IMG/VR virus record: IMGVR_UViG_3300032053_000002
Coordinates: 62,001 to 126,000 of that record
Reading direction: 5' to 3' (one strand)
DNA: 64,000 nt
Position numbers and translations under genes: made by a program. The notes under the pieces are model-generated. The model was not told the origin of the DNA. It made no database searches and saw only the letters and a list, made by a program, of their open reading frames with translations. Within the stretch, counting starts at the first letter, position 1. Each line of letters starts with the position of its first letter. Shown in pieces: positions 3,991-21,571 of the stretch.

Positions 3991-4141
3991 ATATCGAACA
4001 AGATACGGTGACGACTATGGCCTTTCGGCCAGGCGGACGCTCTACCCCTGAGCTACGGTCGCTAACTAATAGTCTGACCGGCGAAGACTTGAACTTCGCG
4101 ACATTCTGCATAGGATAATCATCAATCCATCGGCTCGATAT
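3991..4141 (-). ncRNA. yrlA: YrlA-type Y RNA (circularly permuted tRNA mimic with Ro-binding stem)
   Basis: ATATCGAGC-C-GA pairs with TT-GTTCGATAT (bulged C); order T-arm (GCGAAG TTCAAGT CTTCGC), loop-closed acceptor (CGGTC/GACCG), D-arm (GCTC AGGGGTA GAGC); about 1 kb upstream of rsr. Confidence 0.88.
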
Positions 4142-4152
4142 ATCAAAGAATA

Positions 4153-4209
4153 GTGAACAAGTAATCTAATAACGGGAGTCTGAATGATAACCGTTATTAT
4201 TCGGCTCAC
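4153..4209 (-). ncRNA. Short Y-like RNA (YrlB-like), copy B
   Basis: GTGAGC-C-GA / TT-GTTCAC stem; upper stem TAATAACGG/CCGTTATTA; GGTTATC motif. Confidence 0.75.
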
Positions 4210-4219
4210 CACGTTCCAG

Positions 4220-4293
4220 TTGCGGGAGCAAGAATCGAACTTGCGTTTGTACGGCTTATGAGACCGTGCTGGCACCACTCCAGTCATCCCACA
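4220..4293 (-). tRNA. tRNA-Met (CAT)
   Basis: Cloverleaf; ACGGT CT CAT AA GCCGT. Confidence 0.9.
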
Positions 4294-4307
4294 ATATAAA
4301 ATAAATT

Positions 4308-4367
4308 GACGGATAATTTGCTGAAAAGCGCTTTTCTCTGACGGTAACGTTTCTCTATCGACCCATC
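4308..4367 (-). ncRNA. Short Y-like RNA, copy C
   Basis: GATGGGT-C-GA / TT-ATCCGTC; GAGAAACG-TTACC ... AAAAG-CGCTTTTC. Confidence 0.65.
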
Positions 4368-4430
4368 AAAATCCCGAATCCGTATTTCTACGAACTCATT
4401 ACTGTTCCTGCACATGGCAGGTCAGCTAAA

Positions 4431-4850
4431 ATAAAAGAGTGGTGAGATTAGCATTTACTCACAAGCCTGAACCCGGACAGATTTTTAGTAGCACACCAGT
4501 TAACAGGCGTCCCGGTTAACTTTATATGGTGGAGAGAACCAGCGTCTCTCAACATTCACTAGTAGTAGCTATGTATGCCAACAAGTGGGGGATTTTAGCA
4601 AAAGCACCGCCTTTTTCGAATGAACCCCCGGAGTTGACCAACTCCCGAGAAAGGCGTCTACTTATCTGTGCGAATCGTGCAACCAACGAAAAACTTTTTC
4701 AAGTTTGTCGCCGTACTTTACCTACCTACATAGGTATTCAGTCACACTCATACTCATCAAATCCGAACAAATATGTAGAACCGATTCTACATAGCTAAAT
4801 AGCATAGTACGGTTTCGATGAGTTTCGTCGCCACGCAGGGCGACAAATAA
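4431..4850 (-). ncRNA. Unidentified large structured RNA(s)
   Basis: No credible minus-strand ORF; several perfect stems and crossing pairings. Confidence 0.55.
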
Positions 4851-4870
4851 TTTTCAAAGAACAAAAAACT

Positions 4871-4973
4871 GACGGATAAAAGTGGACAACGAGATTGGCG
4901 AGCGTCACGTCGTGCTTCATCGCACGGCTTAGCCGTGCTTTCTATTGAGATAACGTTGTTCCGACGACCCATC
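4871..4973 (-). ncRNA. Y-like RNA, copy D
   Basis: GATGGGT-C-G / T-ATCCGTC terminal stem identical to copy C; ACAACG-TTATC; GCACGGC/GCCGTGC hairpin. Confidence 0.6.
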
Positions 4974-4990
4974 AAATTTATATTTATAAA

Positions 4991-5114
4991 TAGCGACTGT
5001 GACTCTATGGGTACTCTTAGTTAAGCATTCCAGCTTAAGGTAAGGAGTTCTATACAGTAAGCCATAGTCTATCTGTATCGATCATATTCCCTACGTATGC
5101 ACGAGTAGTCGCCA
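4991..5114 (-). ncRNA. Unidentified structured RNA
   Basis: TGGCGACT/AGTCGCTA closing stem, AT-rich flanks. Confidence 0.4.
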
Positions 5115-5122
5115 AATAAAAC

Positions 5123-5368
5123 TTTTAGGATAAGGAGCGACCAGGATGGGAATTACTTTTTTTCCCGTGTTTCAAGCCACGTTTTTATTTACATTGTTTT
5201 CTCAATGAGAACTTTTACGAAATCCTAAAACGGGAAATTTTTACGTGTTTCAAGCACGGAACAATTACTCACTACTTATTTTGTTTGAAGTGAATGGTTA
5301 GACGCTCAACCCTAACCTTTTTTCCTAATTACAAGTATTATGATAACCCTGCATCATCGACCCTAAAA
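5123..5368 (-). ncRNA. Long Y-like RNA, copy E (246 nt)
   Basis: TTTTAGGGT-C-GA / TT-ATCCTAAAA; CAGGGT/ATCCTG; GGGTTATC; two CGTG-(G)CTTGAAA-CACG hairpins. Confidence 0.65.
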
Positions 5369-5373
5369 ATTAT

Positions 5374-5450
5374 TGAGAGATCCCACAGGTCGGCATTTCT
5401 GCGTTTGGTACTTTAATAGCGCCACGATTTACTGTGGATTTACTCTCTCA
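5374..5450 (-). ncRNA. Unidentified structured RNA
   Basis: GAGAGA..ATCCACAG / CTGTGGGATCTCTC stem enclosing a GCA-GAAA-TGC hairpin; follows a boxA-like motif. Confidence 0.5.
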
Positions 5451-5622
5451 TACTTCAAAGAACAAAATGCAAGATTCGCGAAAGGAAATGATTCACGCCC
5501 AGAGATTCGCGAATCGAGAGCCCATTCTACGCATGGTAGACGGGACGAATATAAATATATGTATTTTTTATAAACATACTTATTATACAACCATTAAAAT
5601 AAAAAGTTCCATTTTTTTCATT

Positions 5623-5946
5623 TTATTTTTCATTTATTGACGATGTATATTTTATAAGTTCAGCAAAAAATTTTACGTATTCTTCTAATATCTTCGGATT
5701 AATAAATTCATTTTTTTCATAACTATTTTCCAACTTAACAAATTCATTTTTCGCTCTTAGAAAATTCTCCCTCTTCCACGCAAACTCTTCAGCATATCTT
5801 TCGTCTAGAAAAAACGGCTCTTTGTTGAATATTTCTTCTAATTCGACAATAGAATTTTTTATAAACATCATTATGTCAAGCCAGTTCATAACAGATTCTA
5901 TTGTCGCCTTTGAATGTTCCACTTTTTTAATTTCCTTTTTCTTCAT
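5623..5946 (-). CDS. Hypothetical protein
   Basis: 107-aa ORF below a TTGACT-type promoter. Confidence 0.6.
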   Translation of the reverse strand: MKKKEIKKVEHSKATIESVMNWLDIMMFIKNSIVELEEIFNKEPFFLDERYAEEFAWKRENFLRAKNEFVKLENSYEKNEFINPKILEEYVKFFAELIKYTSSINEK

Positions 5947-6209
5947 ATTATAAATATAAGAAAAAAATCGCGAACAGTCAAGTAAATTATTTTATATCTT
6001 CAAACTGAACATCAACCATTTCTTCGCAGAAGAAAAGGGTGCCATCCTTTTTAAGAACCAAATCAGAATTACTATACCACTTAAACCATTCTAATCTATT
6101 CGCAGAGACACCCTCGTCTTTTACTTTTAATTTAACTACGCATTTTTTATCTTGAAAGTTTATAATTTCCATTGTTTTAATAAAAGAAGGCGGCGCAATT
6201 GCGTCCACT

Positions 6210-20489: not shown

Positions 20490-20492
20490 ATG

Positions 20493-20563
20493 AGCGCTAT
20501 ATCGGAATTGAACCGACGTCTCTTGGTTGGAAGCCAAGTATAATACCTTTATACCAATAGCGC
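20493..20563 (-). tRNA. tRNA-Gly (TCC)
   Basis: CTTGG CT TCC AA CCAAG; U73. Confidence 0.93.
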
Positions 20564-20614
20564 ATTTACATTATTACGATTTTTACATAGTCAACTATAT
20601 AAAAATCTTTTTTG

Positions 20615-20687
20615 TGGACTCCCTGGGGGTCGAACCCAGCTCTTCGGATTTTCAGTCCGCCGCAGCTACCGAGTTTGCTTGAAGTCC
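20615..20687 (-). tRNA. tRNA-Phe (GAA)
   Basis: CGGA CT GAA AA TCCG. Confidence 0.92.
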
Positions 20688-20752
20688 ATTCATTATAAAA
20701 TCAATGTTTCAAATCGTTCTAATTTCTTTCCTTTCTTTTTACAGATTATTTG

Positions 20753-20824
20753 AGCTCCCGTCCGGCCTTGAACCGAAGTCTGATGATTACGAATCAACTG
20801 TTTTGCCAACTAAACTACGGAAGC
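20753..20824 (-). tRNA. tRNA-Thr (CGT)
   Basis: GTTGA TT CGT AA TCATC. Confidence 0.85.
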
Positions 20825-20836
20825 ATTTCTTTTTTG

Positions 20837-20909
20837 CTCCAGCGGTGAGACTCGAACTCACAACCTCGTGCTTAACAGGCACTTGCTCCGCCAATTGAGC
20901 TACGCTGGA
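20837..20909 (-). tRNA. tRNA-Asn (GTT)
   Basis: GTGC CT GTT AA GCAC; G73. Confidence 0.93.
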
Positions 20910-20913
20910 ATTA

Positions 20914-20989
20914 TGGAGTCGGTGGAGGGACTCGAACCCCCGAATAGTGGGTTTGCAGCCCACCGCGATAGCCACTACGCCACACCGAC
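20914..20989 (-). tRNA. tRNA-Cys (GCA), CCA encoded
   Basis: GTGGG CT GCA AA CCCAC; U73. Confidence 0.93.
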
Positions 20990-20999
20990 ATTTTCTTTG

Positions 21000-21079
21000 C
21001 GCCCACGACAGGACTCGAACCCGCATTTCCAACTCCACTTACGGATAGTGCGTTCGAAGCGCACCTCGGTTACGTGGGC
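21000..21079 (-). tRNA. Non-cloverleaf tRNA-Arg-like RNA (TCG)
   Basis: GTGCG CT TCG AA CGCAC directly after ACCGAG; ATCCGTAAGTGGAGTTGGAAAT; T-arm. Confidence 0.75.
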
Positions 21080-21086
21080 AAATTTG

Positions 21087-21159
21087 TAGAGCCAGGGGGA
21101 ATCGAACCCGTCCATTTCTGGGTTGAAGGCCCAGTTGCCTACCGTTAGCAGATGGCTCC
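21087..21159 (-). tRNA. tRNA-Glu (TTC), atypical C33
   Basis: CTGGG CC TTC AA CCCAG. Confidence 0.8.
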
Positions 21160-21328
21160 ATTATGAAATAAAAACAACCCCGTAGCCTCACACTTCCTAC
21201 TTCCAAGAGCCACGCTCCCTACACACCAAAGTTGTTTTCCTTATGTCAAAGAACTCCCTATAATATACAAAAGTAATCTCTACTTGTCAACTGTTTTTTT
21301 CATCTTGACATCACAATTTGTGATTTCG

Positions 21329-21401
21329 AGCTGGAGAACGGGATTGAACCGTCGGCTTCCTGCTTACCAAGCAGGTACTCTACCATCTGAGTTACTCCAG
21401 C
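21329..21401 (-). tRNA. tRNA-Thr (GGT)
   Basis: CCTGC TT GGT AA GCAGG. Confidence 0.93.
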
Positions 21402-21409
21402 AAATTCAG

Positions 21410-21481
21410 TCTGGGCGACTGGGTTCGAACCAGCGCGTTCCCGGTTCCAAGCCGGGGTTCTTCCATCTGAACTACGCCCAG
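21410..21481 (-). tRNA. tRNA-Pro (TGG)
   Basis: CCCGG CT TGG AA CCGGG. Confidence 0.92.
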
Positions 21482-21485
21482 TTAT

Positions 21486-21571
21486 AAATGAGCAAATGTT
21501 TGACAACGACTTTTATTCGGTTGTAGCCGAATTCTCTTTTGTAGGGATAACCGTTATCGTTCGGCTCATTT
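21486..21571 (-). ncRNA. Y-like RNA, copy G
   Basis: AAATGAGC-C-GA / TT-GCTCATTT; GATAACGG-TTATC ... AAAAG-TCGTTGTC. Confidence 0.72.

Follow-up and report, generated by a model that had tools for sequence, protein, structure and literature searches.

The stretch of DNA analysed here, 64,000 nucleotides from positions 62,001 to 126,000 of IMG/VR record IMGVR_UViG_3300032053_000002 and designated the window, is part of the 292,723 bp genome of a huge phage and contains a gene encoding Ro60 (Rsr) and seven small RNAs with the architecture of Y RNAs. The window and ~8.7 kb beyond its start (locus L001) of this 293-kb genome were examined and, coming from 64 kb, the seven RNAs are a lower bound. 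Nearly every substantial open reading frame (ORF) in the window, and all 44 of its transfer RNA (tRNA) genes, are on the minus strand. The Ro60 gene (1331..3019, minus strand) encodes a full-length orthologue of 562 amino acids that matches the Pfam TROVE (E 4e-36) and vWA_Ro60 (E 4e-59) profiles and aligns end-to-end with the solved structures 9nen, 2nvo (Deinococcus Rsr) and 1yvp (Xenopus), with E-values of 1e-108 to 1e-112. These alignments span Ro60 residues 14-560 and include the TROVE HEAT-repeat ring and the vWA domain. The phage protein retains the block KY(Q/K)xRxGWSHxDLLRLSH, including the equivalents of K170, R174 and H187 (Xenopus numbering), which have roles in the binding of Y RNA and misfolded RNA. 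Five of the RNAs, Y1 to Y5, are encoded 1.0-2.4 kb upstream of Ro60, and Y6 and Y7 are 13 and 18 kb upstream, all on the same strand as Ro60.

All seven RNAs had been proposed in a first-pass annotation made from the letters alone; each was found on the minus strand at the position proposed, and the terminal helices listed there are exact when that strand is read. Beginning at the 5′-end, each RNA has the first strand of a terminal helix (8-10 bp), then a single bulged C, a G(A/U) opposite UU, 0-2 unpaired bases and an upper helix of 8-10 bp. This is followed by UUAUC in six of the seven and by UUACC in Y3, and then by the variable inner region, designated the payload. Past the payload, the second strand of the upper helix is followed by an internal loop of 4-6 nt on the 3′ side, and UU leads into the second strand of the terminal helix. 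The terminal helix sequences differ, with AUAUCGAGC/GUUCGAUAU in Y1, GUGAGC/GUUCAC in Y2, GAUGGGU/AUCCGUC in Y3 and Y4, UUUUAGGGU/AUCCUAAAA in Y5, AACGAGC/GUUCGUU in Y6 and AAAUGAGC/GCUCAUUU in Y7. The annotation had these as one Ro-binding stem. A docking layout is common to all seven, but the stems fall into two related subfamilies, with 5′ GAGC-C-GA(A/U) and 3′ UU-G(U/C)UC in subfamily A (Y1, Y2, Y6 and Y7) and 5′ GGGU-C-G(A/U) and 3′ UU-AUCC in subfamily B (Y3, Y4 and Y5). Similarly, where G(A) had been described as paired to UU, the G·U pair is invariant but the A:U pair is present only in the GAGC subfamily, and this second pair holds in 8 of 21 and 17 of 26 sequences in the two alignments described below. 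Across relatives, the bulged C, the G·U pair that follows it and a G·U or G-C pair two pairs before it do not vary.

The payloads, predicted to range from about 15 to about 200 nt, measure from 15 nt in Y2 to ~190 nt in Y5. Y1 (3991..4141, minus strand, as are all that follow) has a subfamily A stem, with a 9-bp helix, the C and GA:UU, and a tRNA-like payload of the YrlA type; the UUAU of its motif is probably paired in the modelled fold. Y2 (4151..4211) is a minimal RNA of 61 nt from subfamily A, with a 15-nt loop that opens with UUAUC, and Y6 (16150..16213) is a second minimal member of this subfamily with a short loop. The fourth, Y7 (21486..21571), carries a hairpin payload. In subfamily B, Y3 (4307..4368) is short and has a weak upper helix, Y4 (4870..4974) has a variable hairpin and a conserved payload motif, and Y5 (5122..5369) has the ~190-nt payload. 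Y2, Y3 and Y6, with loops of 13-18 nt, are essentially bare stems.

As the annotation had noted, two of the RNAs are embedded among tRNA genes, Y6 between tRNA-Pro and tRNA-His and Y7 between tRNA-Thr and tRNA-Pro; Y2 and Y3 also flank a tRNA-Met gene (4219..4293, minus strand; ARAGORN and Rfam) that is present in the same cluster in four loci from related phages (L009, L012, L017 and L021). The junctions are tight. The first base of Y7 directly follows tRNA-Thr and its end is 4 nt before tRNA-Pro. For Y6, the distances are 3 nt from the preceding tRNA-Pro and 10 nt to tRNA-His, and around tRNA-Met, Y3 ends 13 nt ahead of the tRNA and Y2 begins 7 nt past it. In loci L023, L209 and L034, the corresponding distances are 0-2 nt upstream and 3-8 nt downstream, and in L125 successive copies are spaced by 8-11 nt. 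Release by tRNA-processing enzymes is therefore most likely, and, from the arrangement of the genes, Y RNAs and tRNAs are most likely co-processed. Y1 to Y5 would be transcribed from a 1.4-kb non-coding operon upstream of Ro60, with tRNA-Met and one other structured RNA, and Y6 and Y7 from the long tRNA array. They would then be cut from these polycistronic precursors by RNase P at the downstream tRNA and by RNase Z or trimming at the upstream tRNA. The other structured RNA (4432..4769, minus strand) is ~340 nt long, is not a Y RNA and has a sub-threshold Rfam match to manA (34.3 bits, gathering 55.2). Similar sequences occupy the same position in L012 (~9450-9790) and L009 (~9480-9820), and Rfam did not recover this RNA in the relatives scanned (L012, L017, L019, L021 and L022). 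A spacer motif, (U)UCUUUGA(A), recurs in the operon, where it follows Y2 and Y4 and precedes Y5 and the ~340-nt RNA (window ~4143-4150, 4850-4860 and 5450-5460, minus strand; also L012 ~8910-8920 and 9440-9452), and might serve as a site of processing or as part of a promoter.

A sequence descriptor of the module (6-bp helix, C, G[AT], N10-11, TTAYC ... TT, helix′) has nine matches on the minus strand of the window, the seven Y RNAs and two extras, and none on the plus strand, versus a mean of 1.36 for both strands of shuffled sequences. The two extras, 55678-55851 within an ORF and 19786-20055 spanning tRNAs, fail the upper-helix test, and a match at 23237-23539 was also rejected. With an upper helix required, Y2, Y4, Y5, Y6 and Y7 are retained. 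The descriptor needs UYAYC, so that copies lacking this escape; a version without the UUAUC requirement was dropped as unspecific (162 matches versus 88 in shuffles). Enforcing the Y-type pairs costs 0.2-4.6 kcal/mol above the free minimum, and the fold z-scores are -2.3 for Y1, -2.9 for Y2, -2.4 for Y5 and -3.1 for Y7, with -1.8 for Y6, -1.3 for Y4 and -0.65 for Y3. A covariance model built from Y2 only, and so too narrow, detected Y6 (31.9 bits) and Y7 (29.6 bits). A second model, R2, was built from Y2, Y6 and Y7, and the three matches that rank next in the window (128 kb, both strands) are Y3 (22 bits, E 0.017), Y1 (17 bits) and Y4 (15.6 bits), with noise, located in ORFs, from ~15 bits. 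A third, R3, built from ten short copies from eight phages, recovered the unseen members Y7 (37.2 bits, E 2e-5) and Y4 (28.3 bits, E 0.006). Model matches taken as chance were 37592-37646, inside a UDG ORF, 8022-8122, inside an ORF with a ribosome-binding site, and 43268-43306 and others at or below the noise level of ~15 bits. Y1 and Y5 are missed by such models because long payload inserts are penalized; both are recovered by the descriptor, and are further supported by a weak YrlA match for Y1 and by orthologues for Y5.

No match to the locus was found by blastn in 50,697 GenBank phages, and a 25-base pattern for the short A-type RNAs retrieved only the contig itself. A search based on Ro60 in IMG/VR and JGI metagenomes returned the contig and only two relatives, with 41-42% identity. 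No Y-like RNA was found in one of these (L002), and a single doubtful descriptor match on the opposite strand of the other (L004) was rejected. A large protein database contains a clade of Ro60 proteins that are 62-67% identical, encoded on phage-like contigs of up to 309 kb. Where the loci of these relatives extend far enough upstream, there is a gene-free stretch of 0.9-1.2 kb directly upstream of Ro60 that typically contains a Y5-like RNA, a Y4-like RNA, tRNA-Met, the ~340-nt RNA and a short Y RNA, with a terminator in L009 and L012. The short Y RNA directly upstream of Ro60 belongs to subfamily B in L009, L012, L015, L021 and L022, and others are present in L017 and L023. L209, on the same 78.7-kb contig as L009, has three A-type Y RNAs between tRNA genes, including the counterparts of Y6 (242-307) and Y7 (391-478), so that this closest relative has at least six Y RNAs. 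In L023, with a Ro60 that is 56% identical, at least six B-type copies are interleaved with ~20 tRNA genes; their stems are near-identical and their loops differ.

The annotation had described the terminal helices as covariation-like, and the pairing is indeed kept by compensatory change in both orthologues and paralogues. RNAalifold, applied to plain MAFFT alignments, predicts both helices for the orthologues of Y4 (L009, L012 and L019), with compensatory CG/GC, CG/UA and GC/AU changes, and of Y5 (L009, L012, L017 and L019), with GC/AU and CG/AU/GC changes, and gives the same two helices with compensatory pairs for subfamily A. With copies of mixed length, MAFFT misregisters the 3′-strand of the upper helix, and a seven-pair core with realignment to the model was therefore used. 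In such a model-fitted alignment of 21 sequences, 91.6% of cells are paired versus 69.2% when shuffled, there are 82 double-sided changes versus 27.9, a value reached by none of 500 shuffles, and the covariation score is 0.637 versus 0.209, falling to 0.17 or less when the partners are slid by 1-3 columns. With 26 distinct sequences from more phages, the values are 93.4% versus 67.9% paired, 118 versus 35 double-sided changes and a score of 0.734 versus 0.236, and all seven upper-helix pairs change on both sides. Blocks of payload sequence are also kept among the Y4 and among the Y5 orthologues, as exemplified by GAAGCAGGACGUGAYGCUCGYCAAUCUC in Y4. The payloads thus differ between copies and are kept between orthologues, which fits the modular design with interchangeable payloads that had been suggested.

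Two IUPAC patterns, one for each subfamily, gave at least 120 matches each in IMG/VR, ascertained therefore through sequences containing a UUAUC-type motif. By our own rough estimate, such short patterns would yield hundreds of chance matches, hence the full descriptor was applied as a filter. Among the matches listed, to which all of the IMG/VR counts given here refer, 73 of 237 loci pass, 30 of them with 2-5 copies. The co-occurrence with TROVE genes that the annotation proposed to check is present: by tblastn, the module is in 24 of the 27 loci that have a TROVE gene and in 49 of the 210 that do not (odds ratio 26, p 3e-11), and in the TROVE-positive loci it shares the strand of the TROVE gene in nearly all cases and, in most, lies within ~1 kb of that gene. 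Rfam searches of these IMG/VR arrays gave sub-threshold YrlA, sbRNA and Y_RNA matches. UUAUC, UUACC or UCAUC is also present in the Y-like RNAs of phage loci ascertained through Ro60 (L007, L008, L009, L012, L015, L017, L019, L021, L022 and L023).

When one genome for each bacterial species was searched with a profile, 80 Ro60 loci were identified, among others in Chloroflexota, Verrucomicrobiota and Armatimonadota, with 153 descriptor matches on the same strand as Ro60 versus 4 on the opposite strand. There are no copies in 17 of these loci, one in 20, two in 19, three in 9, four in 9, five in 4 and six in 2. Seven short Y RNAs directly upstream of a bacterial rsr pass the gathering score of RF01656, the nematode sbRNA family; loci in which this was observed include L302, L309, L310, L312, L336 and L275. 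The annotation knew of no genome with as many as seven Y RNAs, but this number does not stand alone, given the copies in L023 (at least six), in L009 with L209 (six), in other IMG/VR loci (4-5) and in bacterial loci (up to six). Multi-copy sets of Y RNAs with this module are widespread, and seven is at the top of the range.

Some individual loci deserve description. In the Verrucomicrobiota metagenome-assembled genome contigs L302, L307, L309-L312, L325, L328 and L336, some of 0.1-0.75 Mb, Ro60 is located in dense same-strand tRNA arrays and is accompanied by 4-6 Y-like RNAs. Rfam tRNA matches of 106-137 nt are present in Y RNA clusters of L019 (5304-5421), L318 (3123-3244 and 3457-3579), L270 (2869-3005) and L271 (2148-2253), and may be intron-containing tRNAs or tRNA-like Y payloads. 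In Sinorhizobium phage Phosso (L007, PV764938.1), a ~200-nt Y-like RNA (6390-6600) is encoded 1.4 kb upstream of a Ro-like gene and overlaps a hypothetical-protein coding sequence (6450-6695). Its module reads GC-C-GA-C-GUAAAAGGG-UUAUC ... CCCUUUAC-UCAC-UU-GCUUC.

The human Y1 RNA has the order helix-C-GA-A-helix-UUAUC ... helix-GCAC-UU-helix, the same as Y2 of the window. More generally, the Y RNAs of vertebrates and the sbRNAs of nematodes share with the window RNAs a lower helix followed by a bulged C, then a G(A) that faces UU, a single unpaired A and an upper helix; next comes UUAUC, which opens the variable loop, and on the 3′ side there is an internal loop in which C is usually the last base before the UU. 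The UUAUC with which the loop begins is highly conserved in nematode sbRNAs and vertebrate Y RNAs (PMC4450293), and nematodes also have a large paralogous family, with 18 sbRNAs in C. elegans (PMC4726728). Unlike their vertebrate and nematode counterparts, the window RNAs lack a conserved GUG-CAC motif in the upper stem and are not in an RNA polymerase III context, and reviews treat bacterial Y RNAs as non-homologous to the vertebrate clades. At gathering thresholds, Rfam identifies only tRNAs in the whole window; related RNAs elsewhere score 26.5-41.5 bits against RF00019 and RF01656.

The motif documented for the 5′-strand of the bacterial Ro60 site, GNCGAA N0-1 G (PMC4201824), is matched in full by Y6 and Y7 (GAGC-C-GAA(C)G), nearly by Y2 (GAGC-C-GAAU) and Y1 (GAGC-C-GAUG), and in its GNCG(A) part by Y3 to Y5 (GGGU-C-GAU or GGGU-C-GUC). 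As in the window, the YrlA and YrlB RNAs of bacteria and mycobacteriophages (PMC4201824; RF02553) are encoded near Ro60 on the same strand and have an end-paired stem with GNCGA(A). The Y1 payload aligns to YrlA (RF02553) through a permuted tRNA-like region with a T arm (6-bp stem, UUCAAGU loop), an AS stem and a UAGCUCA..GGUAGAGC D arm. Two tandem YrlA RNAs encoded by Gordonia phage Cashline also carry the module, in the form C-GG-A-[helix]-UUACC. The window differs from these systems in having more copies, two stem subfamilies, two RNAs in a tRNA array and, in six of the seven RNAs (Y2 to Y7), no tRNA-like domain. Thermus phage phiLo is similar in encoding a Ro60 with Y-like RNAs (Yrl1 and Yrl2) upstream that have the CGAA motif in a stem-bulge-stem; phiLo Ro60 binds both and forms complexes with the host PNPase (PMC12135203). 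It has two RNAs versus seven here, with neither tRNA-array embedding nor minimal stems reported, a distinction drawn from the published description only. In Deinococcus radiodurans, several small RNAs are encoded upstream of rsr, as in the window, but the payload sequences are unrelated. The working model adopted below is that of Yrn1/Yrn2 and RYPER (Ro60-Y RNA-PNPase), in which the stem is bound to Ro60 and the other end tethers an exoribonuclease. As published, it is the stem through which Y RNAs dock on Ro60, and the opposite end serves for tethering or gating, with PNPase the partner in Deinococcus (PMC4201824, PMC4726728).

The Ro60-site architecture, the bona fide Ro60 gene on the same strand, the covariation and the linkage to TROVE genes agree with the original assignment of these RNAs as Y-type. 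We consider it probable that they are ligands of the phage Ro60 with selected payloads, one tRNA-like (Y1), three structured (Y4, Y5 and Y7) and three bare (Y2, Y3 and Y6), and that they steer or limit the decay and repair of RNA in the course of infection. The RNAs would bind to the outside of the Ro60 ring, each through the same module, which runs from the terminal helix, the bulged C and the G·U to the upper helix and UUAUC, and each would present a different inner domain. The YrlA domain of Y1 is of the type that links bacterial Ro60 to PNPase, the conserved domains of Y4, Y5 and Y7 would bring other partners or substrates, and the bare stems would occupy or gate the Ro60 surface. The purpose of such a set would be the control of RNA decay, repair and quality control in the infected cell.

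Several observations count against this interpretation. The upper helix of Y3 is weak (z -0.65), Y5 is recovered by none of the three covariance models and Y1 is listed by R2 only, at noise level (17 bits). Y1 scores only 22.3 bits (E 0.095) against YrlA, for which the gathering score is 69 bits, and YrlA has no match in Y2 to Y5; RF00019 and RF01656 (gathering 38 bits) have no match in the window cluster at E-values up to 10. At 57-64 nt and 248 nt, some of the RNAs are outside the 80-130 nt of characterized Y RNAs (PMC4201824), and Y6 and Y7 are distant from Ro60. The subfamilies differ next to the bulge, so that, judged from these bases, one Ro60 may not bind both equally. No TROVE gene is apparent on 49 of the 73 module-bearing IMG/VR fragments, which are 1-15 kb long, and model-fitted alignments are biased towards the structure to which they are fitted, a bias from which the RNAalifold results on MAFFT alignments are free.

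An explanation that we consider unlikely retains Ro60 binding but not the adaptor function, with the RNAs acting as lids, gates or stabilizing ligands, or as decoys for the host Rsr, and with payload differences resulting from neutral drift. It would account for the three bare stems with their 13-18-nt loops and for the unrelated loops on near-identical stems in L023, and gating is an accepted Y RNA role (PMC4726728), but the blocks of Y4 and Y5 payload sequence kept across phages with Ro60 proteins only 62-67% identical, and the intact tRNA-like T/AS/D module of Y1, argue for selected payload functions. We regard as distinctly improbable a function unrelated to Ro60 in the processing or stability of tRNA and other non-coding RNA precursors, as spacer hairpins for RNase III or RNase E or as 3′ protective stems. 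The tight junctions with tRNA genes, the U-rich tails after several stems and the module-bearing fragments without a TROVE match would be consistent with this. A spacer hairpin, however, has no need of a bulged C, an invariant G·U, UUAUC and a 3′ loop in which C usually precedes the UU; these asymmetric features match published Ro60-site motifs, linkage to TROVE is strong, and most inter-tRNA spacers of the 44-tRNA array have no such element.

The conservation of UUAUC directly after the upper helix, and the short relatives beside bacterial rsr genes that reach the RF01656 gathering score, would also fit a Ro60-independent, sbRNA-like role in which the upper stem and UUAUC, and not the Ro60 site, are the active parts. 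This is very improbable, given that the GUG-CAC upper-stem motif is not conserved and the upper helices covary freely, that the Ro60 site in the lower stem is the most conserved part, and that the linkage is to TROVE and not to replication genes. Each RNA does have terminal inverted repeats, and those of L023 have nearly identical stems, as might be expected of selfish MITE-like repeats or intrinsic terminators with a coincidental likeness to Y RNAs. That reading is scarcely credible and is largely refuted: the elements are strictly strand-specific, both in the window, with no plus-strand match, and in the bacterial loci (153 versus 4), compensatory changes preserve RNA pairing, including a conserved G·U that DNA repeats such as REP or MITE elements would not need, the terminator scan called none of the Y stems, and their orthologous positions are conserved across phages. 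Beyond the probable reading as Ro60 ligands with selected payloads, a wider and decidedly more tentative proposal is that the stem, bulge and UUAUC may constitute one ancient Ro60-docking element of phages, bacteria, nematodes and vertebrates, and that some phages and bacteria might keep libraries of such RNAs, cut from tRNA arrays by tRNA-processing enzymes, which as interchangeable guides or adaptors would retarget a single Ro60 ring to different partners in RNA processing or different substrates, for example in phage-host conflicts that involve tRNA cleavage and repair.

The window encodes a set of RNA-repair proteins, all from the minus strand: an Rnl1-type RNA ligase (36018-37193), a protein with HD and P-loop kinase domains that resembles a repair gene of the kinase/phosphatase type (34108-35115), an HD_5 phosphohydrolase (35406-36005) and a nucleotidyltransferase (11659-12381). 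Together with Ro60 and the 44 tRNAs, these look like a tRNA damage and repair toolkit. No gene for PNPase or another identified partner was found among the window ORFs scanned, and the RNase T, Thg1, RNA-ligase and helicase genes of relatives have no tblastn match in the window. Between the Y RNA cluster and Ro60, an 88-amino-acid ORF (3735-4001, minus strand) has a match to the nicotinamide mononucleotide transporter PnuC (E 3e-7) that is confined to the C-terminal part of the transporter; the ORF is probably a fragment of a gene. A tRNA with a CUA anticodon (amber suppressor; Pyl in ARAGORN) is encoded at 12629-12702 (minus strand) and is kept across the phage clade (L009 5834-5909; L019 1181-1257; L010 513-588), consistent with TAG read-through or recoding, which may occur in these phages. 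ARAGORN also reports, on the minus strand, a tRNA whose anticodon has four bases (caga; 19704-19779) and a tRNA-Asp in which the anticodon is an unusual one, AUC (15422-15502). Other minus-strand genes encode three paralogous proteins with S-adenosylmethionine lyase/DUF3293 domains (8720-9301, 31911-32498 and 32491-33072), a PAS-domain protein (6758-7936) that in relatives is syntenic with HSP20 and Ro60, and a phage-encoded hybrid PAS histidine kinase with a receiver domain (49493-50995).

Phage Ro60 genes and phage Y RNAs are already known, with YrlA documented in 22 phages by 2014 (PMC4201824) and the phiLo Y RNAs in 2025 (PMC12135203). In the searchable literature, which did not extend to key reviews, we found no description of families of five to seven Y RNA copies, of conserved classes of Y payload that are not tRNA-like, of minimal ~60-nt Y RNAs, of Y RNAs embedded in tRNA arrays, or of the metazoan-type UUAUC as a general feature of Y RNAs from bacteria and phages. 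In coliphage Bas63, the Ppl defence is countered by a Ro60-like protein whose gene is directly upstream of a series of tRNA genes (PMC11482910) and, by analogy, the Y RNAs described here may have a part in phage counter-defence.

The conservation of Ro60 and Y RNAs extends from bacteria to humans, but of the roles of the variable part of the RNA, the PNPase tether of Deinococcus alone is well understood. This phage and its relatives provide a natural experiment, with different conserved payloads and with RNA-repair genes and tRNAs nearby; the payloads could be used as bait for partners, and the minimal forms of 57-64 nt would be convenient for structures of Ro60 recognition. The metazoan-type UUAUC and multi-copy arrays are common beside phage and bacterial Ro60 genes, current Rfam models miss both, and both bear on the question of a common ancestry for bacterial and animal Y RNAs.

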